The notes under the pieces are model-generated. The model worked only from the letters and a program-made list of their open reading frames with translations. It searched no databases and was not told where the DNA came from. Shown here piece after piece: positions 1-43,383 of a stretch of 64,000 bases of DNA. Position 1 is the stretch's first letter, and every line of letters begins with the position of its first letter. The stretch lies in contig NW_025767053.1 of the NCBI RefSeq assembly GCF_003918875.1, forward strand, positions 434,001 through 498,000, read 5' to 3'. The DNA is from Haliotis rubra. Taxonomy: Eukaryota. A program made the translations under genes and the position numbers.

Positions 1-110
1 GTGATCACCCTCCTGTTTCGGCTCTGTACCACCTCGGTGACGGTGTAGTAACCGGTGGAGTTGAGGATGACGGGGTTGATGCTGAAGTCACCCACGTACT
101 GCCAGCGCAA
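1..110 (-). CDS. Ig-domain gene A, coding exon 3 (runs off the window): LRWQYVGDFSINPVILNSTGYYTVTEVVQSRNRRVI
   Basis: Acceptor gtctgtgcag| on the - strand at 120..111. Phase 0 matches exon 2. Supplies the Ig C-strand Trp after the exon-2 Cys. Confidence 0.8.
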   Translation of the reverse strand, partial: MRWQYVGDFSINPVILNSTGYYTVTEVVQSRNRRVI

Positions 111-477
111 CTGCACAGACAAGTCGTCCCGATTAACATCGTTGTTTACATACTAAACAGTGTACGGACCGTGTAGCTTAACTCAATAGCAATCAGCCGG
201 AATGGTCTCACCATTTTACATCTTTTAAAAATATATTTTAAAAGTCTTTTGGAAAAAGTATATTTAAAAAACAATTGTTCCGAAATATACAGTAAAATTC
301 CGCTGTGTCGAATCTGAAGGGAGGTAAGCTAAACATTCGTGTTACCCGAGGTTTGATACAACCCAAAAAGATGGATAATGAGGAACACTTACTTCGAGAC
401 AACCCTATATTCAACAAGGTCCGACACAACAGTGCTTAACTGTAACGGAAAACTATGTTGTTATGTTTTAATAATTT

Positions 478-2090
478 CGAGCTGTTTTGAAACTAACGGA
501 GAAGCATGAAGCACACTTTTCTCTCTGTTACTGGGACGGTGGGGTAGCCTAATGGTTAAAGTGTTTGCTCGTCACGCCAAATCTGGAGCTGTTTTGAAAC
601 TAACGGACATTTCCATGAAGCACACATTTCTCTCTGTTACTGGGACGGTGGGGTAGCCTAATGGTTAAAGTGTTCGCTCGTCACGCCAAATCTGGAGCTG
701 TTTTGAAACTAACGGACATGTCCATGAAGCACACATTTCTCTCTGTTACTGGGACGGTGGGGTAGCCTAATGGTTAAAGTGTTTGCTCGTCACGCCAAAT
801 CTGGAGCTGTTTTGAAAATAACGGACATGTCCATGAAGCACACATTTCTCTCTGTTACTGGGACGGTGGGGTAGCCTAATGGTTAAAGTGTTTGCTTGTC
901 ACGCCAAATCTGGAGCTGTTTTGAAACTAACGGACATGTCCATGAAGCACACATTTCTCTCTGTTACTGGGACGGTGGGGTAGCCTTAATGGTTAAAGTG
1001 TTTGCTCGTCACGCCAAATCTGGAGCTGTTTTGAAACTAACGGACATGTCCATGAAGCACATTTTTCTCTGTTACTGGGACGGTGGGGTAGCCTAATGGT
1101 TAAAGTGTTTGCTCGTCACGCCAAATCTGGAGCTGTTTTGAAACTAACGGACATGTCCATGAAGCACACATTTCTCTCTGTTACTGGGACGGTGGGGTAG
1201 CCTAATGGTTAAAGTGTTTGCTCGTCACGCCAAATCTGGAGCTGTTTTGAAACTAACGGACATGTCCATGAAGCACACATTTTCTCTGTTACTGGGACGG
1301 TGGGGTAGCCTAATGGTTAAAGTGTTTGCTCGTCACGCCAAATCTGGAGCTGTTTTGTAACTAACGGACATGTCCATGAAGCACACATTTCTCTGTTACT
1401 GGGACGGTGGGGTAGCCTAATGGTTAAAGTGTTCGCTCGTCACGCCAAATCTGGAGCTGTTTTGAAACTAACGGACATGTCCATGAAGCACACTTTTCTC
1501 TCTGTTACTGGGACGGTGGGGTAGCCTAATGGTTAAAGTGTTTGCTTGTCACGCCAAATCTGGAGCTGTTTTGAAACTAACGGACATGTCCATGAAGCAC
1601 ACATTTCTCTCTGTTACTGGGACGGTGGGGTAGCCTAATGGTTAAAGTGTTTGCTTGTCACGCCAAATCTGGAGCTGTTTTGAAACTAACGGACATGTCC
1701 ATGAAGCACACATTTCTCTCTGTTACTGGGACGGTGGGGTAGCCTAATGGTTAAAGTGTTCGCTCGTCACGCCAAATCTGGAGCTGTTTTGAAACTAACG
1801 GACATGTCCATGAAGCACACATTTTCTCTCTGTTACTGGGACGGTGGGGTAGCCTAATGGTTAAAGTGTTTGCTTGTCACGCCAAATCTGGAGCTGTTTT
1901 GAAACTAACGGACATGTCCATGAAGCACACATTTCTCTCTGTTACTGGGACGGTGGGGTAGCCTAATGGTTAAAGTGTTTGCTTGTCACGCCAAATCTGG
2001 AGCTGTTTTGAAACTAACGGACATGTCCATGAAGCACACATTTCTCTCTGTTACTGGGACGGTGGGGTAGCCTAATGGTTAAAGTGTTCG
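478..2090 (+). repeat. Tandem array, ~109-bp unit x ~15, each unit containing the 5' head of the tRNA-derived SINE
   Basis: GGGACGGTGGGGTAGCCTAATGGTTAAAG recurs at 533, 642, 751 ... 2056. Confidence 0.95.
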
Positions 2091-2244
2091 ATCGACACTC
2101 CGAAGGCCCAGGTTTGATTCCTAACATGGTTACAATATGTGAAGCTGATTTCTTGTGAAGCCGTGATAGTGCCGGAATATTGCTAAACGCAGCGTAAAGC
2201 CTAAATCACTCATTCACTCACTCACTCACTCACTCACTCACTCA
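2056..2244 (+). mobile_element. tRNA-derived SINE (family 1), diverged, with (ACTC)n tail; terminates the 109-bp array
   Basis: A box, degenerate B box (GGTTTGATTCC), GGAATATTGCTAAA tail and ACTC repeats. Confidence 0.85.
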
Positions 2245-2248
2245 TTAC

Positions 2249-2406
2249 CTGAACATCTTTGATCCCGTCTATACCGGTCACTACACACTCTAGCTCCACG
2301 GTCTTTCCCACGGCTGCTACTAAACGCGTTCCATTTCCGTTGGGGATGCGAACAGTGGGAACAGCCTGCGCCACCAGCAGGGTCAACGACGACACCACCA
2401 ACAACT
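2249..2406 (-). CDS. Ig-domain gene A, coding exon 2: end of signal peptide plus first half of Ig (ELLVVSSLTLLVAQAVPTVRIPNGNGTRLVAAVGKTVELECVVTGIDGIKDVQ)
   Basis: Acceptor gtgtttcag|, donor CAG|gtaatg. 158 nt, phase 1 to 0. Hydrophobic stretch followed by the Ig motif GKTVELEC. Confidence 0.85.
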
Positions 2407-2459
2407 CTGAAACACGGAACATGCAACAATGAATGTGTATCCTCGTACAACACTTAATG

Positions 2460-3377
2460 TATAAACACAAAAGGGTATCGCATCAACTATGATATTTAAC
2501 CCCCATATAGTTATTTATATTCATATCATAATCATGTTTATTTGTATGATTATTTTAACACTCCTTACTTTGATTTTAGATATATGCTTGCAGAGATCGA
2601 ATTCAAGCATCACTTGCAATACGTGAACCTGTCACAAAGCAAACGGATCCTACAGATCAATTACGAGGAAAACAGCAGTGGATTTCGTTGTTGAAAAACA
2701 AATATGGGCCTCCTCAGCCGACAAGTGTTCGAAGAACTGTGTATGCGGAATGCTGGCATGTCAATTGGGGCTATTGCGTGACTGACCAGCAACCATCAGC
2801 AAACCAATGCAGGACAACCCCGAGCGCGTTCCTTAGATGCATCTCATCAGCAACTCCACCTTCAATCCAGATCAATCCTGATCTCAGTCCCATTGAGCAT
2901 GTCTGGAACATTATGAGCCTCACAGTAGGCCAGAGACATCCCCATTGATGCATTGGAACACGCCCTCCATCAAGAATAAACCGCAATACCCCAACGTCAA
3001 ATTCAACGTCCGATAGAGTCATTGAGGAGGAGGGCGAGGGTTGTTCTTACAGTTGGCGGTGGGTACACCAGATATTGGCAATGCGTTCTGTTATTGATAC
3101 TTATCTGATTTCTTGAAGATTTTATGCCATAATCTTGAAAATGACTTATACGATCATACTTATCAACATTACAAAATGAATACTTTTTACCATGTTTGCT
3201 TCTGTGGCAAAACCTGTTTTTCTTTCACCTTGTCTTAAGATTTGTTATTTAGTTATTCCACGAATGTCAGTTTATCGAGATAGTGATTTGAGATTTGGAT
3301 ACTTTCCTTTGGCTATGGTAACATACTGAAACTATGGAAAATATGGGATGTTGCGATACTTGTATCCATGTGTATAT
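2460..3377 (+). mobile_element. Degenerate, internally deleted Tc1/mariner element
   Basis: PDLSPIEHVW motif at ~2877-2906. Weak terminal inverted match (gtatcgcatca / tgttgcgatac). Boundaries approximate. Confidence 0.55.
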
Positions 3378-3660
3378 AACTTTGATCACAAATGTACTCT
3401 TTACATCTCATGGAATGTGTCTGGACGGATAACGGCGACTGGTTGTTCTCTGACAGTGACCCTTGATGTATCAACAGATTATTCCCAGGAACTGGGTTAC
3501 AGGAGATAACTGCATAATTCGTGCTGACTTCACGGTTATACCGCTGGCGTATATGATATAGAAGGTCTGACGTTAATTCAGCGTTGGCGTGTCAGTAATT
3601 CTAGCTAACATCCAGTCAGCGCACACGTCTTTACGTCACAGCAGTATATGGAAGAAAGGA

Positions 3661-3873
3661 GTGAGTGAGTTGAGCTTTACGCCGCACTCTGTAAATAATC
3701 GAGTCTGGACCAGACAATCCAGTTATCAACAGCAGGAGCATCGATTTGCGCAATTGGGAACCGATGACATGTGTCAACCAAGTCAGCGAGCCCGACCACC
3801 CGATCCCGTTAGTCGCCTATTTCCACATGCATAGGTTACTGAAGGCCAATATTCTAACCCGGACCTTCACGGG
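3661..3873 (-). mobile_element. SINE-like family 2 copy with 12-bp TSD TGGAAGAAAGGA
   Basis: Matches the other copies at 7.6, 37.3, 39.7, 41.5, 54.7 and 58.8 kb. TSD at 3649..3660 and 3878..3889. Confidence 0.85.
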
Positions 3874-4619
3874 TCAGTGGAAGAAAGGAAGCCACCTTGT
3901 GTGGAAGAAAAACGAACTGTCGCCTACCGCGTCAAGGACACTCAATATTCAGAATATAATGTACACCCATGTTGAGGTCATGCACACACCCCGGAGTAAT
4001 GGAGTTTGGAGTGTGGGAACGGGTGTTCGGATTCGTTTGTTCATTTCCTCGCTGAAATTTTAATATAACCGAGAACGTGACATGTGTACAACAGACACGA
4101 CGTATAACCATATGTGCCATTACTTATACACACGTCACGAGTCATTCACACATTCACGAGGGGTGTGTGAAGATGCCCGCGGGTCTTGAGGAGCTGATGA
4201 ACATTGTGTGTTACTTTCTGATCCCCTTCGGGCTGGAGATCGGAGAGCATACACTGACACAGAGGCTTCATCAACCCTGCACACTGACTAAGAGTCACAT
4301 CAACCCAAGACTACCACCTAGTCTCTGAAATGACTATAATTTACACACACAAAAACAATAGGTCTTACGTTATGTTAATAATCTCCAAAAGGAAAACTGA
4401 AGAAGTTTAGACTTGCCATACATTCTAGACTTGCATGGTCTTTCTTGGATATATTTGTTTCAGGGTCTGTATGACAGACTACACCAAGCCTAGAAATCCG
4501 AGAACAATTATCAACGCAAGGGGTACATCAGGTGTTCTCCCATGACGCAGACAGGCAGTTCGCAGACGCCTTAAAACAACAACATTTACGGTTCAATGAA
4601 CAGATTAGCTACTACATCA

Positions 4620-4881
4620 TAGAGGGTACATCAAAACTAGAGATCCGAGAATATTGAATAACATAGAGGGTACATCAAAACTAGAGATCCGAGAATATTG
4701 AATACTAGTAACATAGAGGGTACATCAAAACTAGAGATCCGAGAATATTGAATAACATAGAGGGTACATCAAAACTAGAGATCCGAGAACATTGAATAAC
4801 ATAGAGGGTACATCAAAACTAGAGATCCGAGAACATTGAATAACATAGAGGGTACATCAAAACTAGAGATCCGAGAACATT
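4620..4881 (+). repeat. Tandem array, 44-bp unit x ~6
   Basis: TAGAGGGTACATCAAAACTAGAGATCCGAGAATATTGAATAACA repeated. Confidence 0.9.
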
Positions 4882-6610
4882 ATTTTACCTCTGAGGGCAC
4901 ATTAAGCCAAGAAATCCAAGAACACTATTATAACACAGAAGGTACATGAACCCAAACAGTCAACATCAGTAACATCAGCCAAGGTTGACTGCTTCAGGTA
5001 ATACCTGTACCTTTACCTGTCGTACACACAACAACAATGCGTAAGTGCACACGTACCAGTAGAGTAACTACCCCTTTATTTGTACATCGCTGACCTCCAC
5101 GGCTTTTCCTTTGCCGAGCTTACTGTCTAGCCAATTATGTTAATTATGTTGTGTTTTATATATACATCCCCTCCTCTTCTTGATGTTCTGTATCGAAACG
5201 TCGCACTCACGTTATAAAAGAAGTTGTTATCCATAAAGTGTGTTCAAATTTGTATGTCCTAACTTCTAAAATGACACTTAGAGAAGCAACGCCTTATTGT
5301 TATTTTTACATAGAGGGTACATGAAGCCTAGAGATCCTAGTTTGGACTAAAGAAGCAGGTGGAAAGTAGAAAACACCAATCACTGTATAGCTAGCATGAG
5401 GTTAATTACTATACATATAATCCCTGAACTTTCCTTGCCTTCTAATCCATCATCACGATAGGCGTGATGTACGGGAGCATTTGAAGCCTTGTGTGTGCAC
5501 ACACTGTGGTAATCCAATGCGCATATTTGACGTGAAGTAATTACTTTCATACCTGTCGTCCTCTATAGCCAGATAATGACAGCCAACGGTTGACTGCTTC
5601 AGGTAATATCTTGGCACTTATACCTGCGGTGTTAAACGCTCTGATGCCCACACACAACAAAGCCTAAGTGCACAGGTAGCAGTAGTGATCACGGATAATG
5701 GCTGTCCAATGGCGGAATGCGACCTCTGGGTAGTAAAACCTTCGGCCATGGCCATGGAATTGAGAAGTTACATAACCTTGAACATATATGTTTGATTTAT
5801 CTATGAAAGTATGAGCAATGAGCTAGTTCTTGATACCAAACATGTCAGTTAAAACAAACCCTGACACCTCGTATCATTATAGCATACAACACCTGGTGTC
5901 ATGACCCATCTTCCGACATCATCAACCATCCATCCTTACAATGCATCACCCTATTCCACATCTTATATCCAACGAAATCCTCCCTTGAAAACCATTTTCC
6001 AGTTCCTCAACCATCCTCTATTCAAATCCAAACCTACTTCACTCTCTCCCAGTATTTCTGTACCATCACACTTTAGGATCAAGATGCCATAGCCTGCAAT
6101 TTTCCTTACACAAATAATAGTTCAAACATGGATCAACATCTTATTGAGAATATCGCAAATGCCGACAAAGCATCGTAAAAGCGGACAAAACATCATAATG
6201 GAAGACAAAACATCGTAGAGGCAGACAAAACGTCGTAGAGGCGGATAAAACATCGGACCATGCAGCGGAAACTGGCCCTTCCCACTCCGACACGCACACA
6301 CACACCGTGACACGCTGATCCCGAGGGGAGGGGGCAGCAGGACACTGACGTCAGTCCCCCAGGGATGCTCCAATATGGCTGCTACATCATCAAAGGTCTT
6401 TACAGTGCACCACCAACAGCGAGAGTGACGCGTTTCTATGAGGTCACGGTTTATTACTGTACTTGATATATAATAAAATGTGAACAATTCAGTTTTGCAA
6501 TATTTTGTCTTGAGTTTATGTGTCAGTATGACCTGTGTAAAATACTGCTAACGTATGCTGATCACAATAAGTTACATATAAGAAGAGTATATGGATGGCA
6601 ACTTCTTCTT

Positions 6611-6700
6611 ATAACACGGCGTTTCTGGGCTATTTCTTGCCCCTTCTTCATCACCAGAAGAAGGGGCAAGAAGTAGCCCAGAAACGCCCGCTCGTGTTAT
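6611..6700. repeat. Near-perfect palindrome (32-bp arms, 7-nt loop) made of Penelope-type hammerhead-like motifs
   Basis: 6618..6649 is the reverse complement of 6657..6688 with one mismatch. The palindrome is seen directly; the Penelope assignment is inference. Confidence 0.7.
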
Positions 6701-7588
6701 TCACCATCTTCTAAATGCCTCTCAAGGATCTCAAAATAAGTGAAAGTACACACATTATTTCACATTACTGTAGATATTATGTCCTGTCTGTACTGACACG
6801 GTGTTCGGGTAGTACAACATTCCGTCATTGATTGGTCCGCAGTTGTTGTAAAGACATCGCACTCTGTGACCACGACTCCAGAAATATCCAAGTCAGTCAG
6901 GTGATAAGCGACATACATGCTCTACCATTGTCTAAATTGTTGTACCACTTGCACACTCTGTGACATGATGCTACATACGATGCTACCTAGGTAAACATGA
7001 ACTAAACCATAATTTGCTAAAGATCAAAATTTGATGGATGAAAGATGTCATCCAAGAAATAAAGACTGAAATATCCAGGACACAATGATAGGGTAGCACC
7101 CAGCTCTAAGACCTCAGTATTGCGATGGATGGACGGGGGTGTGCAGTCATGGGTACGATCTGCTAGAAAACTGTTTGGTTGGATCGTGACGGAATCGTTG
7201 CACATCAACATCAGGGAGTACAGCAACAGTTGGTACGGGGGATTGTAGGACATGGACACATGTATGTCTTTTTGGTGTGAAAAAGGTCGCTTAACGAACG
7301 AAGAATTAATCATTGTTTGATGGGCATTCTAGAACGAAATTCTACATCGAAACGTCGCTCTATGCAATAAATAAGAATTTGCATCTCGCTGTGCATAGTT
7401 ACGTCCCTTAATCGTGACAGGATCCGCTAGCAGAATCTGGGATACGAATCAGTTAACATTGCGAGTTGGTCATTTTGAACTCACCACCTCTACTAACCTA
7501 CCTCCGTGATATGCACGGGGTATCTGAAATACTAATCAACTCTCAAACCAAATGATCGGGTCGATAGTAAATACTTCCATTTCTGTAA

Positions 7589-7813
7589 CTCGTGAAGGTC
7601 TTCAGCAACCCATGCTTGTCGTAAGGAGCAACTGGCAGGATCGGGTGGTCAGGCTCGCTGACTTGGTTGACACATGTTACCGCATCCCAACTGCATAGAT
7701 CGATGCTCATGTTGTTGATCACTGGATTGTCTGGTCCAGTCTCGATTATTTACAGACCGTCGCCATACAACTGAAATGTTGCTGAGTGCGGCGTAAAACT
7801 AAACTCACTCACT
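7589..7813 (+). mobile_element. SINE-like family 2 copy
   Basis: CAACCCATGCTTGTCGTAAG...GCTGAGTGCGGCGTAAAACTAAACTCACTC. Confidence 0.85.
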
Positions 7814-8095
7814 CCTTTTCTGTCCATTCGTTTATAGCTTAATGGTGTTTTAATCTATGATTTTCTGTACATATGGTACGAAATATGTCCCTGCAAATAT
7901 GCACACTGGTTGACTGACAGAAGCAAAAGGCCATGCAGGCTGGTACACTATAGGTGGTAAACATAGGCCCCGGGACAAGCTGTGATGATGGATTGACAAC
8001 AACAGTGTGGATGACGGGCGCCTTTGTTTGTGTGTCAGGGGATTGTGATACATGCAGCAATTCACCTTCCCGTGCACTGTGCTATGTTGAGAGAA

Positions 8096-9850
8096 ATTGG
8101 CTATATGTACTATGCTACATGGTGTATGACTGGCTGTATGCGCTATGCTATATGACTGGCTGTATGCGCTATGCTATATGACTGGCTATGTGTACTATGC
8201 TATATGGCGTATGACTGGCTATATGTTCTATGCTGTATGACTGGCTATATATACTATGCTATATGGCGTATGACTGGCTATGTGTACTATGCTATATGGC
8301 GTATGACTGGCTATATGTGCTATGCTATATGACTGGCTATATGTGCTATGCTATATGGTGTATGACTGGCTATATGTGCTACGCTATATGACTGGCTATG
8401 TGTACTATGCTATATGGCGTATGACTGGCTATATGTGCTATGCTGTATGACTGGCTATGTGTACTATGCTATATGGCGTATGACTGGCTATATGTGCTAT
8501 GCTATATGACTGGCTATATGTGCTATGCTATATCGTTTATGACTGGCTATATGTCCTACGCTATATGACTGGCTATGTGTACTATGCTATATGGCGTATG
8601 ACTGGCTATATGTGCTATGCTGTATGACTGGCTATGTGTACTATGCTATATGGCGTATGACTGGCTATATGTGCTATGCTATATGACTGGCTATGTGTAC
8701 TATGCTATATGGCGTATGACTGGCTATATGTGCTACGCTATATGACTGGCTATGTGTGCTATGCTATATGACTGGCTATGTGTACTATGCTATATGGTGT
8801 ATGTCTGGGTATATGTGCTATGCTATATGACTGGCTATATGTGCTATGCTATATGACTGGCTATGTGTACTATGCTATATGGCGTATGACTGGCTATATG
8901 TGCTATGCTATATGACTGGCTATGTGTACTATGCTATATGGCGTATGACTGGCTATATGTGCTATGCTATATGACTGGCTATGTGTACTATGCTATATGG
9001 CGTATGACTGGCTATATGTGCTACGCTATATGACTGGCTATATGTGCTATGCTATATGACTGGCTATATGTGCTACGCTATATGACTGGCTATGTGTGCT
9101 ATGCTATATGGTGTATGGCTGGCTATATGTGCTATGCTATATGACTGGCTATATGTGCTATGCTATATGACTGGCTATGTGTACTATGCTATATGGTGTA
9201 TGACTGGCTATATGTGCTATGCTATATGACTGGCTATATGTTCTATGCTATATGACTGGCTATGTGTACTATGCTATACGGCGTATGACTGGCTATATGT
9301 TCTATGCTGTATGACTGGCTATATGTGCTATGCTATATGACTGGCTATATGTTCTATGCTGTATGACTGGCTGTATGTTCTATGCTGTATGACTGGCTAT
9401 ATGTTCTATGCTGTATGACTGGCTATATGTTCTATGCTGTATGACTGGCTATATGGGCTATGCTATATGACTGGCTATATGTTCTATGCTATATGACTGG
9501 CTATATGTTCTATGCTGTATGACTGGCTATATGTTCTATGCTGTATGACTGGCTATATGTTCTATGCTGTATGACTGGCTATATGGGCTATGCTATATGA
9601 CTGGCTATATGTTCTATGCTGTATGACTGGCTATATGTTCTATGCTGTATGACTGGCTATATGGGCTATGCTATATGACTGGCTATATGTTCTATGCTAT
9701 ATGACTGGCTATATGTTCTATGCTGTATGACTGGCTATATGTTCTATGCTATATGACTGGCTATATGTTCTATGCTATATGACTGGCTATATGTGCTATG
9801 CTATATGACTGGCTATATGTGCTATGATATATGGTGCATGGCTGCCTATG
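8096..9850 (+). repeat. Minisatellite with 26-bp and 33-bp units (TATGACTGGCTATATGTGCTATGCTA[TATGGCG])
   Basis: Direct inspection. Confidence 0.95.
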
Positions 9851-11517
9851 TTCTATATGCTATATAATGTATAAGTGTCAGTTATATGCTGTACTATGTA
9901 CGACTTTGAGCTGTATGCCATACAATGAACAAGTGTGTGCTATGCTGTGTGTCACTGACTGGCTTCTGATTGTGTATATCATGTCCAGTTAGATGATTGT
10001 GAGTTCAGAACGGTACAATGTAGCAGTCGATGCACGTTGATGTGTGTAAAATACGGATGGCTAATCGTATTAGGAATCTATTGTATAACATATATTATAC
10101 CTTAACTGAGTATCAGATGAATGGATTTTGTGTCTCGTTTCCAGAAAGATGGATACAGCCTTTCGTGGCTTGAGGCTTTCTGTTGCTGTTCACTACAACA
10201 CACGGCGCGTAAATAAATCTCATTCTTCCTCTTTTATTTACGCAAGTGACTATATTGAGAGTTGGAAATTAAATATTCATCAACATCGGCTACAAGAAAC
10301 AGTAATTGGTGATCGTCATGCTCTGGTTACAGCTGAGCAGCAGCTACGGGTTCACAATGCTGGGACGTTAGGAACAACGTTCAACTAGATCTTAAGACGA
10401 CCAAAAACAGAATAAACGTTTTTATATAATCACAAAATCGGAAGTATGATCCTTGAAATGAATAATCATATTATATATCACGACTTTCAGACAGTATCCA
10501 AGCATTTAGTCAGTATTGACCAATCAGTGTTTGGTGATAGAGGGTTGACGTGAAGTTACTTTAACAAAGATGTCTCTCTTTACGGGTTGATCTGACTTGA
10601 GCTGTTCGCTGTTTTTATTTTTTGTTTGAAATATATCATCTGGTGATCGAATGTGTCATCTGCCTTGATGTGTGATCTGATTGGCCATCATAAGACACAG
10701 TGATCATACACCAACATTATGTCTGGTCAAGGAAGCATAACGTGTCTTCGGTCATTTTTCCTTACATTGGATACAGACACAGGTCTTACTTGTGTGATTG
10801 TGATGATATTTACGATGTGTATTTACGTCCGAAGTGTGACCCTTTGTTGGGCCAAGTCGGTCAGTCATACACCAAGCACCAGTACACCTGAACCAATGTG
10901 TGTAAACGCTCTATTAGCCAGTGAAGTGATTCTTTCATGGTCAGACATGTCCTTAACGCTGTTGTATGTTCGTGTAGAGTCCGACTCGGCGCCGTCCAAT
11001 AGAATTGCACGTTTGGGCGACGGAGATTATTAGGGAATACCGTCAGATTAAATGTGTGCTAGAAATCAGACAAAAGTAACATTACCTGTAAGGGCTATAA
11101 TTTGCGCATGATTTGTTTCGTGAACTATGTGTTTACTTCAGTCATATTGCGTGCATTTAAACACATTTAGAACTGATGCGCGCGAGTGTGTGTGTGTGTG
11201 TGTGTGTTTGAATACATCTCCGTGAGCGTTCTAAGCAATAGTTGACACAGAAATAGTCATTATTGACATGCAGGTATAACAAAGCTGTAGCACGAGCATG
11301 TGATAAAGACAATGATATGTTCAAGTTTTTAGCCTCGTGAGACGTCTAATTTGAACAGTAATGGATTTTTTAAAAACCCAATGTCGGAAATAAACCACAG
11401 TCGTTGCTATGTTGCCTTTTCCGATATTGCCTACTTTTTCACCAGCGAAAAAATCACCATGCAGTTGTCAAATAATTCTTCACACAATCATACAAAAACC
11501 ATGACACAACATCTTAC

Positions 11518-11539
11518 CTGGCAACAGACCTGGGTGCAT
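11518..11539 (-). CDS. Ig-domain gene A, putative coding exon 1 (MHPGLLP + 1 nt)
   Basis: ATG CAC CCA GGT CTG TTG CCA G|gtaaga is a strong phase-1 donor. It joins exon 2 in frame to give a plausible signal peptide. Confidence 0.65.
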
Positions 11540-12291: not shown

Positions 12292-15200
12292 CGGTTATCA
12301 ATACTGGACAATTCCCCACTAGGACATTTCCGCACATGACATTTCGCCACATGACATTTCCCCACACCTGTTTTGTAACCAGTAGGACAATTCCCTACCC
12401 ATCACAAATAATGAATAAACACAAGCTGAGATTGTATATATATATATTGTATTAATATAATTAAATATATAAAATCATATAATGAGCTCATTTTTCATCA
12501 GCTCACTCCGTTTATCTTGGAATTTACTTGGAATGGGGAATCTTTTTCATTTCAGAGTTTGTGATCTGACAGCATTTTACCAGAATATCTCTACATTATT
12601 GTAAATCTCATGTTATCTTGGAGAAAGTTAATATTGGAGAAGGTTATACAGTTATATGTGGCCCCTGTCAGATGGGCTGATGGACACAGGAAATCATTAA
12701 TTGCATCATCTTGAGTCCCATTTTGAAACCCACAGGAAATCATTATAAAACATTCTAATGACCTTACTGACCAACATACCCCTAATGCACAGATTAGTTA
12801 ATCCCACCCCCCTTAACAAGTGAATACACATAATGCACAGATTAGGTAATCCCATCCCCCCTAACAAGTGAATACACATCATGCACAGATTAGGTAATCC
12901 CATTGCCCCTAGCAAGTGAATACACATCATGCACAGATTAGGTAATCCCATTGCCCCTAGCAAGTGAATACACATAATGCACAGATTAGGTAATCCCATC
13001 CCCCCTAACAAGTGAATACACATCATGCACAGATTAGGTAATCCCATCCCCCCTAACAAGTGAATACACATCATGCACAGATTAGGTAATCCCATCGCCC
13101 CTAACAAGTGAATACACATCATGCACAGATTAGGTAATCCCATCCCCCCTAACAAGTGAATACACATCATGCACAGATTAGGTAATCCCCTAACAAGTGA
13201 ATACACATAATGCACAGATTAGTAAATCCCATCCCCTAACAAGTGAATACACATCATGCACAGATTAGGTAATCCCATCCCCTAACAAGTGAATACACAT
13301 CATGCACAGATTAGGTAATCCCATCCCCCCTAACAAGTGAATACACATCATGCACAGATAAGGTAATCCCATCCCCCCTAACAAGTGAATACACATCATG
13401 CACAGATTAGGTAATCCCATTGCCCCTAGCAAGTGAATACACATAATGCACAGATTAGGTAATCCCATCGCCCCTAACAAGTGAATACACATCATGCACA
13501 GATTAGGTAATCCCATCCCCCTAACAAGTGAATACACATCATGCACAGATTAGGTAATCCCCTAACAAGTGAATACACATAATGCACAGATTAGTAAATC
13601 CCATCCCCCTAACAAGTGAATACACATCATGCACAGATTAGGTAATCCCATCCCCCCTAACAAGTGAATACACATCATGCACAGATTAGGTAATCCCATC
13701 CCCCCTAACAAGTGAATACACATCATGCACAGATTAGGTAATCCCATCGCCCCTAACAAGTGAATACACATCATGCACAGATTAGGTAATCCCATCCCCC
13801 CTAACAAGTGAATACACATCATGCACAGATTAGGTAATCCCCTAACAAGTGAATACACATAATGCACAGATTAGTAAATCCCATCCCCCTAACAAGTGAA
13901 TACACATCATGCACAGATTAGGTAATCCCATCCCCCTAACAAGTGAATACACATCATGCACAGATTAGGTAATCCCCTAACAAGTGAATACACATAATGC
14001 ACAGATTAGTAAATCCCATCCCCCTAACAAGTGAATACACATCATGCACAGATTAGGTAATCCCATCCCCCCTAACAAGTGAATACACATCATGCACAGA
14101 TTAGGTAATCCCATCCCCCTAACAAGTGAATACACATCATGCACAGATTAGGTAATCCCATCCCCTAACAAGTGAATACACATCATGCACAGATTAGGTA
14201 ATCCCATCCCCCCGAACAAGTGAATACACATCATGCACAGATTAGGTAATCCCATTGCCCCTAGCAAGTGAATACACATAATGCACAGATTAGGTAATCC
14301 CATCCCCCCTAACAAGTGAATACACATCATGCACAGATTAGGTAATCCTATCCCCCCTAACAAGTGAATGCACATCATGCACAGATTAGGTAATCCCATC
14401 CCCCTTAACAAGTGAATACACATGATGCACAGATTAGGTAATCCCATCCCCCCTAACAAGTGAATACACATCATGCACAGATTAGGTAATCCCCTAACAA
14501 GTGAATACACATCATGCACAGATTAGGTAATCCCATCCCCCCTAACAAGTGAATACACATAATGCACAGATTAGGTAATCCCATCGCCCCTAACAAGTGC
14601 ATACACATCATGCACAGATTAGTTAATCCCATCGCATCTATTGTACTACAAATTTGTGATGTTTGTGGGGAATTGTCCTACTGGTTACAAAACAGGTGTG
14701 GGGAAATGTCAAGATGGGGAAATGTCATGTGGGGAATTGTCCTAGTGGGGAATTGTCCTGATGGGGAAATGTTCTACACTCGGGTATTATACGGTCCATC
14801 AGACTTGAATACACATGATGCACAGATTAGGTAATCCCATCCCCCCTAACAAGTGAATACACATCATGCACAGATTAGGTAATCCCATCCCCCCTAACAA
14901 GTGAATACACATCATGCACAGATTAGGTAATCCCATCCCCCCTAACAAGTGAATACACATCATGCACAGATTAGGTAATCCCATCCCCCTTAACAAGTGA
15001 ATACACATCATGCACAGATTAGGTAATCCCATTGCCCCTAGCAAGTGAATACACATAATGCACAGATTAGGTAATCCCATCGCCCCTAACAAGTGAATAC
15101 ACATCATGCACAGATTAGGTAATCCCATCCCCCCTAACAAGTGAATACACATCATGCACAGATTAGGTAATCCCATCCCCCCTAACAAGTGAATACACAT

Positions 15201-16520
15201 CATGCACAGATTAGGTAATCCCATCCCCCCTAACAAGTGAATACACATAATGCACAGATTAGGTAATCCCCTAACAAGTGAATACACATAATGCACAGAT
15301 TAGTAAATCCCATCCCCCCTAACAAGTGAATACACATCATGCACAGATTAGGTAATCCCCTAACAAGTGAATACACATAATGCACAGATTAGTAAATCCC
15401 ATCCCCCCTAACAAGTGAATACACATCATGCACAGATTAGGTAATCCCATCCCCCCTAACAAGTGAATACACATCATGCACAGATCAGGTAATCCCATCG
15501 CCCCTAACAAGTGAATACACATCATGCACAGATTAGGTAATCCCATCCCCCTAACAAGTGAATACACATCATGCACAGATTAGGTAATCCCTAACAAGTG
15601 AATACACATAATGCACAGATTAGGTAATCCCATCCCCCTAACAAGTGAATACACATCATGCACAGATTAGGTAATCCCATCCCCTAACAAGTGAATACAC
15701 ATCATGCACAGATTAGGTAATCCCATCCCCCCTAACAAGTGAATACACATAATGCACAGATTAGGTAATCCCCTAACAAGTGAATACACATAATGCACAG
15801 ATTAGTAAATCCCATCTCCCCTAACAAGTGAATACACATCATGCACAGATTAGGTAATCCCCTAACAAGTGAATACACATAATGCACAGATTAGTAAATC
15901 CCATCCCCCCTAACAAGTGAATACACATCATGCACAGATTAGGTAATCCCATCCCCCCTAACAAGTGAATACACATCATGCACAGATTAGGTAATCCCAT
16001 CGCCCCTAACAAGTGAATACACATCATGCACAGATTAGGTAATCCCATCCCCCCTAACAAGTGAATACACATCATGCACAGATTAGGTAATCCCCTAACA
16101 AGTGAATACACATAATGCACAGATTAGTAAATCCCATCCCCCTAACAAGTGAATACACATCATGCACAGATTAGGTAATCCCATTGCCCCTAACAAGTGC
16201 ATACACATCATGCACAGATTAGGTAATCCCCTAACAAGTGAATACACATAATGCACAGATTAGTAAATCCCATCCCCCTAACAAGTGAATACACATCATG
16301 CACAGATTAGGTAATCCCATCGCCCCTAACAAGTGCATACACATCATGCACAGATTAGTTAATCCCATCGCATCTATTGTACTACAAATTTGTGATGTTT
16401 GTGGGGAATTGTCCTACTGGTTACAAAACAGGTGTGGGGAAATGTCAAGATGGGGAAATGTCATGTGGGGAATTGTCCTAGTGGGGAATTGTCCTGATGG
16501 GGAAATGTTCTACACTCGGG
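12292..16520. mobile_element. Non-autonomous TIR element with GGACAATTCCCC subterminal repeats, enclosing a 48-bp satellite; right half duplicated
   Basis: 12305..12410 is the inverted match of 14650..14775 and of 16386..16512. Confidence 0.75.
12783..16365 (+). repeat. Tandem array, ~48-bp unit (ATGCACAGATTAGGTAATCCCATCCCCCCTAACAAGTGAATACACATC), interrupted at ~14635..14805
   Basis: Direct inspection. Explains the MGLPNLCMMCIHLLGG pseudo-ORFs. Confidence 0.95.
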
Positions 16521-16845
16521 TATTATACGGTCCATCAGACTTGAAGTGCTTAATAGGCAACGTGACTGATGATATGGAGGTTAACGATCCACTGAATAAA
16601 GGTTTGTTCGTGGATATACCGCTTGAACCTACAAGTTTGATCAACAAGATTCTGTCGGGTACTACGGCACTGGTCGGTTTTTAATTGCCCCATTCACAAA
16701 AAAAGGTATTTTGAACGGATGCTCTAATGATAGGCAACTGCTCTTACTAGTTCTATAGCCCTAGTCTATAAACATTTGGGGTTAGTCTACAGAGTGACTG
16801 CTCCTTGGGCTATCATGTGGCCGATATCGCCCCTGAGACTAGCCA

Positions 16846-17704
16846 AATGATCAACTGTATTCGTAGTTTTAATGATCAAATCGTAGAACCTTAGCACCAA
16901 TGTATAAACAATATACATGTATTTGAGTATTGCGGCCATATTTGATGATATGCCCAACGATCAACTGTATTCGTAGTTTTAATGATCAAATCGTAGAACC
17001 TTAGCACCAATGTATAAACAATATACATGTATCTGAGTATTGCGGCCATATTTGATGATATGCCCAATGATCAACTGTATTCGTAGTTTTAATGATCAAA
17101 TCGTAGAACCTTAGTACCAATGTATAAACAATATACATGTATCTGAGTATTGCGGCCACATTTGATGATATGCCCAATGATCAACTGTATTCGTAGTTTT
17201 AATGATCAAATCGCAGAACCTTAGAACCAATGTATAAACAATATACATGTATCTGAGTATTGCGGCCATATTTGATGATATGCCCAATGATCAACTGTAT
17301 TCGTAGTTTTAATGATCAAATCGCAGAACCTTAGCACCAAGGTATAAACAATATACATGTATCTGAGTATTGCGGCCATATTTGATGATATGCCCAATGA
17401 TCAACTGTATTCGTAGTTTTAATGATCAAATCGTAGAACCTTAGCACCAAGGTATAAACAATTTACATGTATCTGAGTATTGCGGCCACATTTGATGATA
17501 TGCCCAATGATCAACTGTATTCGTAGTTTTAATGATCAAATCGTAGAACCTTAGCACCAATGTATAAACAATATACATGTATCTGAGTATTGCGGCCATA
17601 TTTGATGATATGCCCAATGATCAACTGTATTCGTAGTTTTAATGATCAAATCGTAGAACCTTAGCACCAATGTATAAACAATTTACATGTCTCTAAGTAT
17701 TGCA
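16846..17704 (+). repeat. Tandem array, 110-bp unit x ~7.8
   Basis: AATGATCAACTGTATTCG recurs at 16846, 16956, 17066 ... 17616. Confidence 0.95.
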
Positions 17705-20620: not shown

Positions 20621-20876
20621 GAGTTTAGTTTTACGCCGCCTGTAGCAATATTCCAGCAATATGACGGCTGGGGAAACCAGAAATGGGCTTCACACATAAT
20701 GCCCATGTGGGGAATCGAACCCGGGTCTTCGGCTTGACGAGCGAACACTTTAACCACTAGGTTACCCCACCGTCCCAGATGTGTGCGCTTCATGGACATG
20801 TCCGTTAGTTTTAAAACCGCTCCAGATTTGGCGTGACGAACGAACACTTTAACCACAAGGCTACCGAACCGCCCTA
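20621..20876 (-). mobile_element. SINE family 1 with a duplicated head and the same spacer as the 109-bp array
   Basis: Full SINE at 20621..20776, preceded on the - strand by head + AAATCTGGAGCGGTTTTAAAACTAACGGACATGTCCATGAAGC. Confidence 0.85.
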
Positions 20877-30079: not shown

Positions 30080-31364
30080 TAGTATGACCAGAACTTATTG
30101 AGAATTTTAGGAATATGTTTAATTGGATTTCTAGCATAAACAACCTTGACCTGCTATCAAGTGCTTGGTTTCATTCAAGAGAGACAACTCCGTTAATCCT
30201 TTTTCACAAGTTTGTGAAGAGTTATCCCCCTTTTTTTACTTGCTAGCAGACGACATTTTCAGTGATCCTCAGTATGGATGATTTAGAGAAGAGGAAGTTG
30301 ATTTTAGAGTATTATAACAAGGACATCAGATCAGCTAAAGTGATTTCAAGTAGAACAGGCATCCCTTTGTCCACTGTTTATCGTGTTTTTAAAAACATTG
30401 CAAATGGATATGGCATTGAGCACCAGGGAGGCGCAGGTAGGTCCAGAAAATTGACTGTCGGTGACAGGAGGCGGCTTGGTATTCTTGTTTCTAAAAACAA
30501 ACGAAGGCGTTTAGAAAACTTAAGGCTGGATATGATTGATAGAGGAACTGTATCTGTCTGTAAGGAGACAATTAGAACTGAGCTGCAAGCAACGGGTTGG
30601 CAGAAAAGTCGAGGAATTCTATCACCGATCATGAAACCTGAACAAAAGGAGCGAAGGTTGAACTGGTGCATTGACATTTTAACTGGGACAATGTGAATTT
30701 CTCAGATGAAAGTTCTGTGTGGCTGTTTCCTAATACACTGAAATTCAGGACCAAACAAACTGAAAAACCTTTGTATCAGCGCCCAAAGTACAGTCCGAAA
30801 TTTAACGTGTGGGGTGGCATAACTCTGTTAGGGGCAACGCCCCTCTGTGTATTTGAAGGGAATATGATCAGTGAGCGGTACACAGATATTCTCGAGGGAC
30901 ATTTACTTCCATCTGCTCACGTGTCCAATCGAAATTTTCGGATTTTCCAGCAGGACGACCCAAAACATCGTTCAAAGCATCCACAGGCCTGGTTTCGGAC
31001 CCAAAATATGACAATATTAGATTGGCCAAGCTATAGCCCTGACCTAAATCCAATAGAAAATGTTTGGGGACTTATGAAGGAAAGTGTCAATAAGAAAAAT
31101 CTGACAAATATTGCTGAAATGAAAGAAGAGGTGGTCCGACATTGGGACAGCATGGACCACGACCTTCTAACTTCTTTGATCAGTAGTATGCCCCACCGCA
31201 TTGAAGCCTGCATTGCTGCCCATGGTGACTTGACAAAATTCTAACTATTCACCTGTCTTTGAATCTGGAGTTATGTTCTGCTAATATTCACATTTAATGA
31301 GTGAATTATTTATTTTAAATTACAATCTTATAAATTAAATTCTCACTAATTTCTGGTTGTACTG
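30080..31364 (+). mobile_element. Full-length Tc1 (DD34E-type) transposon; transposase ~30274..31244 is disrupted
   Basis: TA TSD and ~27-bp imperfect TIRs. HTH region, FSDES, FQQD(-)DPKH and SPDLNPIENVW. Frameshift near 30690. Confidence 0.92.
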
Positions 31365-31934
31365 TATCTACATGATTAATGACGTATCGTCAACATCTCT
31401 GTCATCTTCTCTATCGACATACCATATACACACAATCGTCATAACGACCCAAGTCTGTGAGGGTGTAGCTTCAAGCTGGTGGTGAGATTTGCCCTGAGAC
31501 ATCAGGATATTACATATTAACTTCACTCGGTGTTAACCTGCAGGACAAAACCAGATCCACTGACCTGATGATTGGAGGTCTCCAGAGGCAGGTTGTATAA
31601 CCCTCGTTATTACACAATCCGCGTTATAACGTCTCAAGTTACGTCTATTCACATCATTAATAATAATACAAAAAAATATCAAATAAGCCAGAAATATGGG
31701 AAATATATTTATGTGTATGTGTGATTCCTACATTTGTATTTCGACATCACTTGCATCAGGTACACGTACTTCATATCCAAACGTATGAGAGCAGTCATTT
31801 TTTAGCAATGCGCAAGTAACAGCGAATAGGACTTGCCAGCATTAATGGATTTCACGCCAGATACACACATCACTGCGCCTTAGTCTTCAACGATGACTAC
31901 ACTGAAAGAAACGTGAAAGAAGGCGGTGTCTATA

Positions 31935-33830
31935 TAGGGACGTGACATTGTGTCGATGGTGTCTACACAGTATAGGGACGTGGCATTGTGTCGATGGTGT
32001 CTGCACAGTATAGAGGTGTTATACTGTGTTGATGGTGTCTGCACAGTATAGAGGTGTTATACTGTGTTGATGGTGTCTGCACAGTATAGATGTGTTATAC
32101 TGTGTTGATGGTGTCTGCACAGTATAGGGGTGTGATATTGTGTCGATGGTGTCTGCACAGTATAGGGGTGTGATATTGTGTTGATGGAGTCTACAAACAA
32201 TAGGAATGTGACATTGTGTCGATGGTGTCTGCACATTATAGGAATGTGACATTGTGTCGATGGTGTCTGCACAGTATAGGAATGTGACATTGTGTTGATT
32301 GTATCTGCACAGTATAGGAATTTGACATTGTCTTGATGGTGTCTTCACAGTACAGGAATGTGACATTGTGTGGATGGTGTCTACACAGTATAGAAATGGG
32401 ACATTGTGTTGATAGTGTCTACACAGTATAGGAATGTGACATTGTGTTGATAGTGTCTACACTTCATAGGAATGTGACATTGTGTGGGTGATGTCTACAC
32501 AGTATAGAAATGGGACATTGTGTTGATAGTGTCTACACAGTATAGGAATGTGACATTGTGTTGATAGTGTCTACACAGTATAGGAATGTGACATTGTGTC
32601 GGTGATGTCTACACAGTATAGAAATGGGACATTGTGTTGATAGTTTCTACACAGTATAGGAATGTGACATTGTGTTGATAGTGTCTACACTTCATAGGAA
32701 TGTGACATTGTGTGGGTGATGTCTACACAGTATAGAAATGGGACATTGTGTTGATAGTGTCTACACAGTATAGGAATGTGACATTGTGTTGATAGTGTCT
32801 ACACTTCATAGGAATGTGACATTGTGTGGGTGATGTCTACACAGTATAGAAATGGGACATTGTGTTGATAGTGTCTACACAGTATAGGAATGTGACATTG
32901 TGCTAATGGTGCCTACACAGTATAGGAATGGGACATTGTGTTGATAGTGTCTACACAGCATAGGAATGGGACATTGTGTGGGTGATGTCTACACAGTATA
33001 GGAATGGGACATTGTGTTGATAGGGTCTACACAGTATAGGAATGGGACATTGTGTTGATAGTGTCTACACTTCATAGGAATGTGACATTTTGTGGGTGAT
33101 GTCTACACAGTATAGAAATGTGACATTGTGTTGATAGTGTCTACACTTCATAGGAATGGGACATTGTGTGGGTGATGTCTACACAGTATAGAGATGTGAC
33201 ATTGTGTTGATGGTGTCTACACAGTATAGGAATGTGACATTGTGTTAATGGTACCTACACAGTATAGAAATGTGACATTGTGTTGATAGTGTCTACACAG
33301 TATAGGAATGTGACATTGTGTTGATGGTGTCTACACAGTATAGGAATGTGACGTTGTGTTAATGGTACCTACACAGTATAGGAATGTGACATTGTGTTGA
33401 TAGTCACTACGCAGTATAGAAATGGGACATTGTGTTGATGGTGTCTACACAGTATAGGAATGTGACAATGTGTTAATGGTACCTACACAGTATAGAAATG
33501 TGACATTGTGTTGATAGTGTCTACACGGTATAGGAATGTGACATTGTGTTAATATTGTCTACACGGTATAGGAATGTGACATTGTGTTAATATTGTCTAC
33601 ACGGTATAGGAATGTGACATTGTGTTAATATTGTCTACACGGTATAGGAATGTGACATTGTGTTAATATTGTCTACACAGTTTAGGAATGTGACATTGTG
33701 TTGATATTGTCTACACTCTACAAGAATGTGACATTGTGTTGATGGTGTCCTAACGGACTGTGAATGCGACATTATGAAGATGATATGTTCACACAACAGA
33801 AATGTGACATTGTGAAGGTGATGTCGCCAC
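31935..33830 (+). repeat. Tandem array, 38-bp unit x ~50 (ACACAGTATAGGAATGTGACATTGTGTTGATAGTGTCT)
   Basis: Direct inspection. Confidence 0.95.
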
Positions 33831-35114: not shown

Positions 35115-35142
35115 ATGGCAGGAAGGATTGTACTTGCGTTAG
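35115..35142 (+). CDS. RTK exon 1, start of signal peptide (MAGRIVLAL)
   Basis: gcgATGG Kozak-like context. Donor TTAG|gtgagt is phase 1 and in frame with exon 2. Confidence 0.75.
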
Positions 35143-37258: not shown

Positions 37259-37506
37259 CCCGTGAAGGTCCGGGTTAGAATTGATCTTCAGTAACCCATG
37301 CTTGTTTGTAAGAGGCGACTAACGGGATCGGATGGTCAGACTCGCTGACTCGGTTGACACATGTCATAGGTTCCCAATTGCGCAGATCGATGTTCATGCC
37401 GTTGATCACTGGATTGTCTGGTCCAGTCTCGATTATTTACAGACAGCCGCCATATAGCTATAACATTACTGAGTGTGGTGTAAAACAAAACTCACTCACT
37501 CACTCA
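37259..37506 (+). mobile_element. SINE-like family 2, full length, with 13-bp TSD CTGATCACCTGAT
   Basis: TSD at 37243..37255 and 37507..37519. Confidence 0.88.
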
Positions 37507-39687: not shown

Positions 39688-39952
39688 CCTGTGAAGATCT
39701 GGGGTAGAATTGGTCTCCAGCAACCCATTCTTGTCATAAAAGGCGACTATGCTTGTCGTAAAAGGCGACTAATGGGATCGGGTGGTCTGGCTCGCTGACT
39801 TGGTTGACACATGTCATCGGTTCCCAATTGCGCAGATCGATGCTCATGCTGTTGATCACTGGAATGTCTGGTCCAGACTTGATTATTTACAGACCGCCGC
39901 CATATAGCTGGAATATTGCTGAGTGCGGCGTAAAACTAAACTCACACACTCA
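39688..39952 (+). mobile_element. SINE-like family 2, full length, with 13-bp TSD CTTTATACTCCTT
   Basis: TSD at 39673..39685 and 39953..39965. Confidence 0.88.
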
Positions 39953-41504: not shown

Positions 41505-42710
41505 TTTTGTTTGTTTGTTGTTTAACGCCGCATTCAGCAATATTTCCAGCTATATGACGGCGGTCTGTAAATGATCGAGCCTGAACCAGGCAATCCAATG
41601 ATCAACAGCATGAGCATCAATCTACGCAATTGAGATACGATGGCATGTGACAACCAGGTCAGCGTGTCTGACCACCAGATCCTGTTAGTCGCCAACAAAG
41701 CATGGGTTGCTGAAGACCAGTTCTAGCCCGGTGCGTCACTGGGGATGCAAGCATGGGTTGCTGAAGATCAGTTCTAGCCCGGTGCGTCACTGGGGATGCA
41801 AGCATGGGTTGCTGAAGATCAGTTCTAGCCCGGTGCGTCACTGGGGATGCAAGCATGGGTTGCTGAAGATCAGTTCTAGCCCGGTACGTCACTGGGGATG
41901 CAAGCATGGGTTGCTGAAGACCAGTTCTAGCCCGGTGCGTCAATGGGGATGCAAGCATGGGTTGCTGAAGATCAGTTCTAGCCCGGTGCGTCAATGGGGA
42001 TGCGAGCATGGGTTGCTGAAGACCAGTTCTAGCCCGGTGCGTCACTGGGGATGCAAGCATGGGTTGCTGAAGATCAGTTCTAGCCCGGTGCGTCACTGGG
42101 GATGCAAGCATGGGTTGCTGAAGATCAGTTCTAGCCCGGTGCGTCACTGGGGATGCAAGCATGGGTTGCTGAAGATCAGTTCTAGCCCGGTACGTCACTG
42201 GGGATGCAAGCATGGGTTGCTGAAGACCAGTTCTAGCCCGGTGCGTCAATGGGGATGCAAGCATGGGTTGCTGAAGACCAGTTCTAGCCCGGTGCGTCAA
42301 TGGGGATGCAAGCATGGGTTGCTGAAGATCAGTTCTAGCCCGGTGCGTCAATGGGGATGCAAGCATGGGTTGCTGAAGATCAGTTCTAGCCCGGTACGTC
42401 ACTGGGGATGCAAGCATGGGTTGCTGAAGATCAGTTCTAGCCCGGTACGTCACTGGTGATGCGAGCATGGGTTGCTGAAGACCAGTTCTAGCCCGGTGCG
42501 TCACTGGGGATGCAAGCATGGGTTGCTGAAGACCAGTTCTAGCCCGGTGCGTCACTGGGGATGCAAGCATGGGTTGGTGAAGATCAGTTCTAGCCCGGTG
42601 CGTCACTGGGGATGCAAGCATGGGTTGGTGAAGATCAGTTCTAGCCCGGTGCGTCACTGGTGATGCGAGCATCGGTTGCTGAAGACCAGTTCTAACCCGG
42701 AGCTTCACGG
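41505..42710 (-). mobile_element. SINE-like family 2 whose 5' region is expanded into a 51-bp tandem array
   Basis: Body at 41505..41700, array follows, and the true 5' end TTCTAACCCGGAGCTTCACGG lies at 42690..42710. Confidence 0.85.
41698..42700 (+). repeat. Tandem array, 51-bp unit x ~20
   Basis: AAGCATGGGTTGCTGAAGATCAGTTCTAGCCCGGTGCGTCACTGGGGATGC. Confidence 0.95.
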
Positions 42711-43228
42711 ATCCACAAGTAATGTGAGGTGGTGATCATGGATGACACCACTGGGAAATGGTCCCCATTTGTTTCTTAGCAAGAGTGGCACAGCCGATGA
42801 CTATGTAACTTCATACAGAAACTGATATTTTGCATGTGTATTGGAGTGACAACAGTTCGAACCCAGCTTCACATGAATTTTACAAATGTCACAATTTAAA
42901 TTCGAGTTCGAGACAAGACGGTTGCCGATGTATGAATCGTTGTTGTTTTTTTTGTCTCGAACGTTGGACAGTGCACGATTACGTTATATATACTGGCTCC
43001 ATACTGCATGTTTTTACAACCTATCAAGCGTACCAGCGATCGTTTCATTATGCCCATGCGAAGCTTATATCACGTGATCTTTACTCTCAGGCCCTTCAAC
43101 TACTTGCTTGTTAAAGCACCAAGTGGTGGGTGAATAGGAACTTGTGAGGTCACGTGTTACTTTAGGTCTTCCAGTTTTAGGATATTGCTCTATGGTGTCC
43201 TTTATCACAAAGTTCGAATCTCTTTCAG

Positions 43229-43383
43229 TGTGTCTGTTCAGCGTTGTCAGCGTTGGTTCAGCAGGATTCCCCTCGGACGCCAGCGTGACCATCGCCCCGT
43301 ATGGCTCAGTACAGACACCGACTGCTGGACAGGACTTCGTGCTCAAGTGTTTTATAGACCACGGTCTTTTCGAGTATGTTGAG
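43229..43383 (+). CDS. RTK exon 2: signal peptide end plus Ig1 N-part (VCLFSVVSVGSAGFPSDASVTIAPYGSVQTPTAGQDFVLKCFIDHGLFEYVE)
   Basis: Acceptor tctctttcag|, donor GAG|gtgaga. Ig B-strand motif GQDFVLKC. Confidence 0.85.

Follow-up and report, generated by a model that had tools for sequence, protein, structure and literature searches.

Receptor tyrosine kinases (RTKs) that carry immunoglobulin (Ig) domains include the fibroblast growth factor (FGF) receptors, with three Ig domains, an acid box and two activation-loop tyrosines. They also include Tie1 and Tie2, whose ectodomain is built in the order Ig-Ig-EGF x3-Ig-FN3 x3; no other classical RTK class is known to join Ig with epidermal growth factor (EGF) modules. 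The arthropod Cad96Ca/Stitcher kinases, on the other hand, have a cadherin repeat (a weak Pfam match in the mite protein P0133) and neither Ig nor EGF modules, and they carry a tail of the form D/E-Y-I/L-x-L ... Y ... E-K/R-L/V at the C-terminus. At the level of gene structure, NCAM/L1-type Ig genes use two exons for each Ig domain. Here, we describe two genes, A and B, in a stretch of 64,000 nucleotides (nt) from the abalone Haliotis rubra (contig NW_025767053.1, referred to as C2163, positions 434001-498000). This whole stretch is called the window, and coordinates are window positions unless stated otherwise. The analysis indicates with high probability that A and B are two full-length paralogous RTK genes, which lie head to head and descend from one ancestral gene by an old duplication.

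Each of the systems named above is matched in part. As in NCAM/L1-type genes, an internal intron splits each Ig domain of A and B, although two types of split alternate here. FGF receptors are likewise Ig-containing RTKs, and their kinase is the closest solved structure by sequence, whereas A and B have four Ig domains plus EGF and a single activation-loop tyrosine. With Tie, the two genes share Ig and EGF modules within one RTK ectodomain, but they lack FN3, place EGF after the fourth Ig domain and differ in kinase affinity. The nearest named kinase clade is that of Cad96Ca/Stitcher, which also shares the tail pattern, while the mollusc proteins have Ig and EGF modules and no cadherin repeat. 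Closest of all are RefSeq models from other abalone species, which show the same domain order, N-termini and tails as A and B and received their names by best-hit transfer. As a system, the pair is not new in kind: RefSeq already has models of both genes from sister species, and the arrangement is ordinary for a gene family.

Exon-intron structure of genes A and B

With 40 kb to the left of the window added in order to follow gene A, both genes were modelled from open frames, GT-AG splice sites and phase continuity, and the models were then refined with orthologous proteins. Single exons and orthologue proteins served for database searches, and the joined models, in which the break in gene B was read as XX, were used only for pairwise alignment and trees. 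Gene A spans 11539 to contig position 408258 and encodes 927 amino acids (aa) in 20 coding exons, without an internal stop. The 19 coding exons of gene B (35115 to 60145) encode 894 aa, with one frame break in the assembly. Both products combine a signal peptide, a single transmembrane (TM) helix and a cytoplasmic tyrosine kinase domain, the features of an RTK, and in both the catalytic motifs are all present (glycine loop, VAVK, HRD, DFG and activation-loop tyrosine).

A previous reading made from the sequence alone (the sequence-only reading) had described a head-to-head pair of Ig-receptor genes with alike 5' exons. It had left to be checked whether EGF, TM and kinase exons of gene A follow beyond the left edge of the window or whether gene A continues, instead, as an unrelated Ig protein with other intron positions. 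The former is the case: 17 coding exons of gene A lie left of the window, down to C2163:408258, and encode three more Ig domains, two calcium-binding EGF exons, the TM and juxtamembrane segments and a complete tyrosine kinase that ends in E-E-K-L. In the A/B alignment, the shared introns all match, with 17/17 at the same aligned residue and in the same phase, and the juxtamembrane exons are of phase 0-0 in both genes. The likeness of the 5' exons is the visible end of a gene structure that is conserved over the 17 shared introns. Three differences were found: an extra phase-0 intron within Ig1 is present in gene B only, a second EGF exon in gene A only, and a phase-0 intron in the kinase of gene A divides what is one 235-nt exon in gene B into 123 + 112 nt. 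Overall, A and B are 36% identical, with ~20% identity in the ectodomain and ~60% in the kinase.

Details of the 5' ends held up as well. On direct reading of both genes, the tiny phase-1 first exons (22 vs 28 nt) proved exact, and the second exons (158 vs 155 nt), with the end of the signal peptide and part of an Ig domain, were confirmed to the base. The first introns, estimated at ~9.1 and ~8.1 kb, measure 9111 and 8086 nt, and the phase-0 intron two residues ahead of the Ig tryptophan is found in both genes, with exon 3 starting L-R-W in gene A and V-F-W in gene B. Exon 1 of gene A (ATG at 11539) and of gene B (ATG at 35115) end in the donors CCAG/gtaaga and TTAG/gtgagt, respectively (the slash marks the exon boundary). 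Exon 2 of gene A follows the acceptor tttcag and ends in GTTCAG/gtaatg, exon 2 of gene B ends in Y-V-E/gtgaga, both in phase 0, and exon 3 of gene A extends in full from 110 to -103 (C2163:433897-434110). The N-termini of the abalone orthologues read M-Y-P-G-L-F-P on the gene A side and M-E-G-R-T-V-L-V-L on the gene B side. When the 806 minus-strand ATGs from 2407 to 35000 are compared with the N-terminus of the H. asinina orthologue, a threshold of 4/7 identical residues leaves a single match, the ATG at 11539 (5/7). For the 723 plus-strand ATGs between 11540 and 43228, compared with the H. rufescens orthologue, a threshold of 5/9 likewise leaves 35115 alone (6/9). Because these are the sole N-terminus matches, the tiny first exons are not chance ATG-GT pairs. 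In-frame ATGs just 5' of each exon 2 (2422 in gene A, about 43191 in gene B) were considered as start codons and excluded, since the orthologue N-termini match the tiny exons only.

Pfam scans of single exons and of the orthologues identified V-set/I-set Ig domains, EGF_CA and PK_Tyr_Ser-Thr (PF07714), and found no FN3, cadherin or acid box in A, B or the orthologues. Four Ig domains are followed by two calcium-binding EGF modules in gene A and by one EGF module in gene B. In both genes, Ig1 and Ig3 are split into exons of phases 1-0 and 0-1, by an intron two residues before the tryptophan, and Ig2 and Ig4 into exons of phases 1-2 and 2-1, after the tryptophan. Since the split phases alternate and A-Ig2 and A-Ig4 are clearly similar (z ~10-11), the four-Ig ectodomain looks like a duplicated two-Ig module; it is the exon phases that bring this construction to light. 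The sequence-only reading had further noted that Ig1 of gene A resembles Ig4 of gene B. This resemblance is real and modest (z ~6), but it reflects generic Ig similarity and no special relation, because B Ig4 is the most canonical of the Ig domains and reaches z values of 4-15 against all four domains of gene A.

A few further observations concern the ectodomain. Ig2 of gene B (exons 5-6, 47286-48151) contains no cysteines and so is without the usual intradomain disulfide. Exon 3 of gene B, which encodes the Ig1 loop, is 45% identical to H. rufescens, and exon 14, the first kinase exon, 100%; judged by sequence, the ectodomain evolves very fast between abalone species. In H. asinina, the RefSeq isoforms X3 and X4 fall short of X1 and X2 by 53 aa, exactly the size of the second EGF exon of gene A (contig 416357-416515, 159 nt, phase 1-1). 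This suggests that the exon is optionally skipped, which would give a one-EGF form like that of gene B. No second EGF exon was found in gene B, where an RNA contig leaves no room for it between exons 10 and 12.

In the assembly, exon 16 of gene B contains a 1-nt frameshift at the C6 run 58066-58071, followed by a stop in the kinase insert. The frame was checked with contigs from four read sets aligned to 53500-59040, namely X1 (DNA, same organism), X4 (DNA, close relative) and X7 and X9 (runs that behave as RNA). At 58066, all covering contigs have one letter fewer than the assembly (X1 161/161, X4 47/47, X7 6.8/6.8, X9 10.6/10.6). As DNA and RNA contigs agree in this, the frameshift is an assembly error, and the frame of gene B is open. 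Further single-letter differences between the assembly and the short-read contigs of the same organism were seen at 54588 and 54932, and the assembly seems prone to one-letter indels.

An X9 contig of 2943 nt, without gaps, joins 53660-53778, 54435-54563, a piece of 65-66 nt, 55745-55922, 56902-57012, 57949-58177 and 58397-58632. It confirms exons 11-17 of gene B as modelled, including the juxtamembrane exon, and the orthologue of gene B is transcribed in the close relative from which X9 derives. The flanks of this contig measure 1597 nt upstream, compared to 1348 nt of coding sequence in the model, and 279 nt downstream, compared to 272 nt. Since these lengths fit, gene B should have no further coding exon, none in the N gap included. 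The analysis thereby offers complete, read-supported gene structures for both copies. It also corrects a frameshift of the assembly; uncorrected, this would let gene B pass for a pseudogene or decoy.

Kinase, tail and family placement

A search of a representative protein library with the kinase exons, combined with a cluster look-up, identified orthologues of both genes in other abalones. For gene A, this is XP_067674760.1 from H. asinina ('FGFR3-like isoform X2'), which is 88.7% identical and also 927 aa long. For gene B, XP_046329904.2 from H. rufescens ('FGFR3-like') and XP_071111425.1 from H. cracherodii were found, with 80% identity. The RefSeq abalone models are named FGFR3-like or FGFR4-like, and they match A and B up to and including the tiny first exons.

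The kinase tree places A and B within a mollusc clade of gastropods and bivalves with support of 100/100. Many members of this clade, from Solemya, Ylistrum, Patella and Batillaria, have an ectodomain of Ig and EGF_CA modules. The nearest named neighbors of the clade are arthropod and tardigrade Cad96Ca(-like) kinases, names that are automatic except for the mite record. The tail carries two tyrosines in the pattern D-Y-I-x-L ... Y ... E-K-L, common to A, B and the Cad96Ca-like proteins, and the juxtamembrane exon of both genes contains a conserved tyrosine in an N-x-x-Y-S motif. A and B belong to a mollusc-wide clade of Ig-EGF receptors with a kinase and tail of the Cad96Ca type, and the 'FGFR-like' names in use for abalone and other molluscs are probably misleading, so that the placement amounts to a correction of the family naming. 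A search of the literature on abalone FGFR and on Cad96Ca in molluscs found nothing on the family of A and B.

Origin of the pair and alternative readings

Within the kinase tree, gene B groups with XP_041378022.1 from Gigantopelta (100/99), and gene A with proteins from H. asinina, Gigantopelta, Batillaria, Patella and Lottia (96/91). A duplication confined to abalones is rejected, being 45.6 log-likelihood units worse (p-AU 9e-7 in the approximately unbiased (AU) test). The tree shows that the A/B split predates the divergence of abalone, Gigantopelta and limpets, and the taxa involved would put the duplication at or near the base of living gastropods. The two genes are adjacent, lie on opposite strands, belong to sister lineages and agree in all shared introns. 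Because A and B represent sister lineages and are adjacent and inverted, an inverted duplication in place would be the simplest origin of the pair. Intron positions and phases, the sister lineages and the rejection of a younger event together bear out the old inverted duplication that the sequence-only reading had proposed.

That reading had further suggested that the pair may be part of an Ig-RTK cluster. The tail exon of the family has 11 matches in the genome. On the 1.06-Mb contig, however, only A and B were found, with the other nine elsewhere, so that a cluster at this place is weakly supported at best and amounts to no more than the pair. Two of the tail-exon copies, C2371:18545-18700 and C2371:40672-40836, are both on the plus strand and 22 kb apart, and are probably a head-to-tail pair of the receptor family of A and B.

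Several other readings of the two genes were weighed. In a receptor/decoy (paired receptor) arrangement, as initially considered, gene B would be a truncated, kinase-less partner or a fresh pseudogene by virtue of the exon 16 frameshift. The assembly indeed has this frameshift and the ensuing stop, but none of the four read sets has the extra letter at 58066, and the DNA contigs of the same organism lack it at full depth. Once it is taken out, the reading frame stays open and agrees with the H. rufescens orthologue, to which the exons downstream of exon 16, all intact, are 90-100% identical, and a spliced RNA contig passes through the site. Both genes encode a complete kinase with its catalytic motifs and the same phosphotyrosine tail, and the decoy arrangement is rejected, with hardly any probability left to it. 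Orthology to the FGF receptors of vertebrates is also improbable for A and B, even though the RefSeq labels of their abalone orthologues and the best solved-structure matches (FGFR1-3 kinases, 279 bits) might suggest it. The mite Cad96Ca protein P0133 matches the same FGFR chains better, at 303 bits, and the structure match is therefore not diagnostic. Furthermore, four Ig domains with EGF stand against three with an acid box, and the activation loop of A and B has a single tyrosine (D-V-Y-E-R-T) instead of the pair in the FGFR1-like protein P0147 (Y-Y-K-K), the activation segment of which we take to be that of vertebrate FGFR1. P0147, the sole FGFR1-like reference in the tree, falls outside the group of mollusc and Cad96Ca-like kinases (80/86). 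Very improbable, finally, is an identity as Tie-type receptors, with an Ig and EGF ectodomain on a Tie-like kinase: the combination of modules would point to this class, but A and B have no FN3, the order is Ig x4 followed by EGF and not that of Tie, and their nearest named kinases are Cad96Ca-like.

A weightier alternative concerns the origin of the arrangement, since A and B could be old paralogues that became neighbors by a later rearrangement and not by an inverted duplication in place. The nearest A-like and B-like proteins of Gigantopelta are encoded on different scaffolds (53.39 vs 46.39 Mb), meaning that the adjacency is not conserved in Gigantopelta or that the adjacency of the pair arose later. 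Moreover, the spacer and introns share only dispersed repeats and thus no trace of a duplication junction. However, a trace of this kind is not expected to outlast several hundred million years, the genes that the tree gives as closest paralogues adjoin each other in inverted order, and the second local pair on C2371 implies that local duplication is common in the family. We therefore regard a later rearrangement as unlikely, though with some real chance, and favor the inverted duplication in place.

The separate Gigantopelta scaffolds are one of several points that weigh against reading A and B as two complete receptors from one old duplication. Support for A and B as sister lineages is only moderate (87/83), and the group for the AU test was named after a first tree had been seen. 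The RNA support concerns gene B only, and the organism behind it is a close relative and not the individual of the window itself. The proposed function, lastly, is drawn from general RTK biology: each receptor would bind a ligand through the Ig/EGF ectodomain and form a dimer, upon which the single tyrosine of the activation loop would be autophosphorylated and adaptors would be recruited via the juxtamembrane and tail tyrosines. Given that the ectodomains are far more diverged than the kinases (~20% vs ~60% identity), the two receptors may differ in ligand specificity and share the same kind of downstream signalling. A more far-reaching version, which we consider rather doubtful, is that the pair has been kept head to head since an early-gastropod duplication by shared spacer regulation or by heterodimer formation, and that the mollusc Ig-EGF clade is a separate, undescribed RTK class in which a Cad96Ca-type kinase is combined with a new ectodomain.

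Spacer, introns and repeats

The features of the window are listed in the table below. No host gene was found in the 23.6-kb spacer between the start codons, only reverse-transcriptase and Tc1/mariner fragments as well as satellites, the latter at 12785-16369, 16842-17703, 20857-21639 and 31933-33749.

Table. Coding exons of genes A and B within the window, with intron 1 of gene A and the spacer between the start codons (window positions).
Feature	Position	Strand	Description
Gene A exon 3, part in window	1..110	-	Second half of Ig1; starts L-R-W
Gene A exon 2	2249..2406	-	158 nt; remainder of signal peptide and first half of Ig1
Gene A intron 1	2407..11517	-	9111 nt; padded by tandem arrays 4618-4881 and 8098-9833
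Gene A coding exon 1	11518..11539	-	22 nt; M-H-P-G-L-L-P plus one base, phase 1
Spacer between start codons	11540..35114		23.6 kb; satellites, reverse-transcriptase fragments, Tc1/mariner transposase
Gene B coding exon 1	35115..35142	+	28 nt; M-A-G-R-I-V-L-A-L plus one base, phase 1
Gene B exon 2	43229..43383	+	155 nt; remainder of signal peptide and first part of Ig1
Gene B exon 3	45525..45671	+	Middle of Ig1, starts V-F-W; followed by phase-0 intron without counterpart in A
Gene B exon 4	46365..46476	+	End of Ig1
Gene B exon 5	47286..47436	+	First half of Ig2
Gene B exon 6	48006..48151	+	Second half of Ig2
Gene B exon 7	48560..48663	+	First half of Ig3; ends in phase 0 two residues before Trp, like Ig1
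Gene B exon 8	50274..50493	+	Second half of Ig3
Gene B exon 9	51432..51582	+	First half of Ig4
Gene B exon 10	52058..52191	+	Second half of Ig4
Gene B exon 11	53661..53780	+	Single EGF-like module; joined to exon 12 by RNA contigs
Gene B exon 12	54437..54564	+	Transmembrane segment
Gene B exon 13	55289..55354	+	Juxtamembrane, 66 nt, phase 0-0; RNA contig leaves exactly this length
Gene B exon 14	55747..55924	+	Kinase: glycine loop, VAVK
Gene B exon 15	56904..57014	+	Kinase
Gene B exon 16	57951..58178	+	Kinase insert; one extra C in assembly in run 58066-58071
Gene B exon 17	58397..58631	+	Kinase: HRD through activation loop to DVWSFG; 235 nt
Gene B exon 18	59218..59314	+	Kinase; N gap 59048-59187 in preceding intron
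Gene B exon 19	59968..60145	+	End of kinase, two-tyrosine tail, D-E-K-L, stop

A shared promoter was considered and rejected: when the 600-bp stretches that precede the two ATGs are aligned locally, the best score is 24, a value reached by 25/300 shuffles. A look-alike motif near both ATGs (ATAGT-G/C-ACGTGA) scores below 24 and is within chance. As the upstream regions do not align beyond chance, genes A and B have separate promoters and no bidirectional one. Homology of the long first introns was likewise rejected, the only common sequence being dispersed repeats of ~200 bp, with unrelated tandem arrays padding each intron. The similar length of the two introns is therefore coincidental.

In three introns of the A/B pair, a minisatellite adjoins a splice site and repeats the sequence of that site. 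Intron 7 of gene A is 5968 nt long and consists almost entirely of a 92-bp tandem array (contig 423583-429170, window about -4830 to -10417). The unit is made up of the final 62 nt of exon 7, followed by the splice donor and 30 nt of intronic sequence, so that the donor (GTAG/GTGGGT) recurs in 60 extra copies at a spacing of 92-93 nt. Intron 4 of gene A has 41 copies of a 46-bp unit (window -2944 to -1051), an array that reaches the acceptor of exon 5 and repeats the acceptor-like CAG/GTAC, with 69 copies of CAGGTAC. In gene B, intron 2 contains 80 copies of a 21-bp unit (43403-45086), which start 20 nt past the donor and hold 51 donor-like AGGTGA[AG]A sites. Intron 2 of gene A contains a different, 109-bp tandem array (479-2098, 14.8 copies, 97% alike); a repeat scattered across many contigs of the genome is related to the unit of this array. 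Finally, remnants of the Tc1/mariner type were identified at 30247-31241 (plus strand) in the spacer, with HTH_Tnp_Tc3_2 and DDE_3 domains, and, as a transposase remnant, at 48922-49777 (minus strand) inside intron 7 of gene B.

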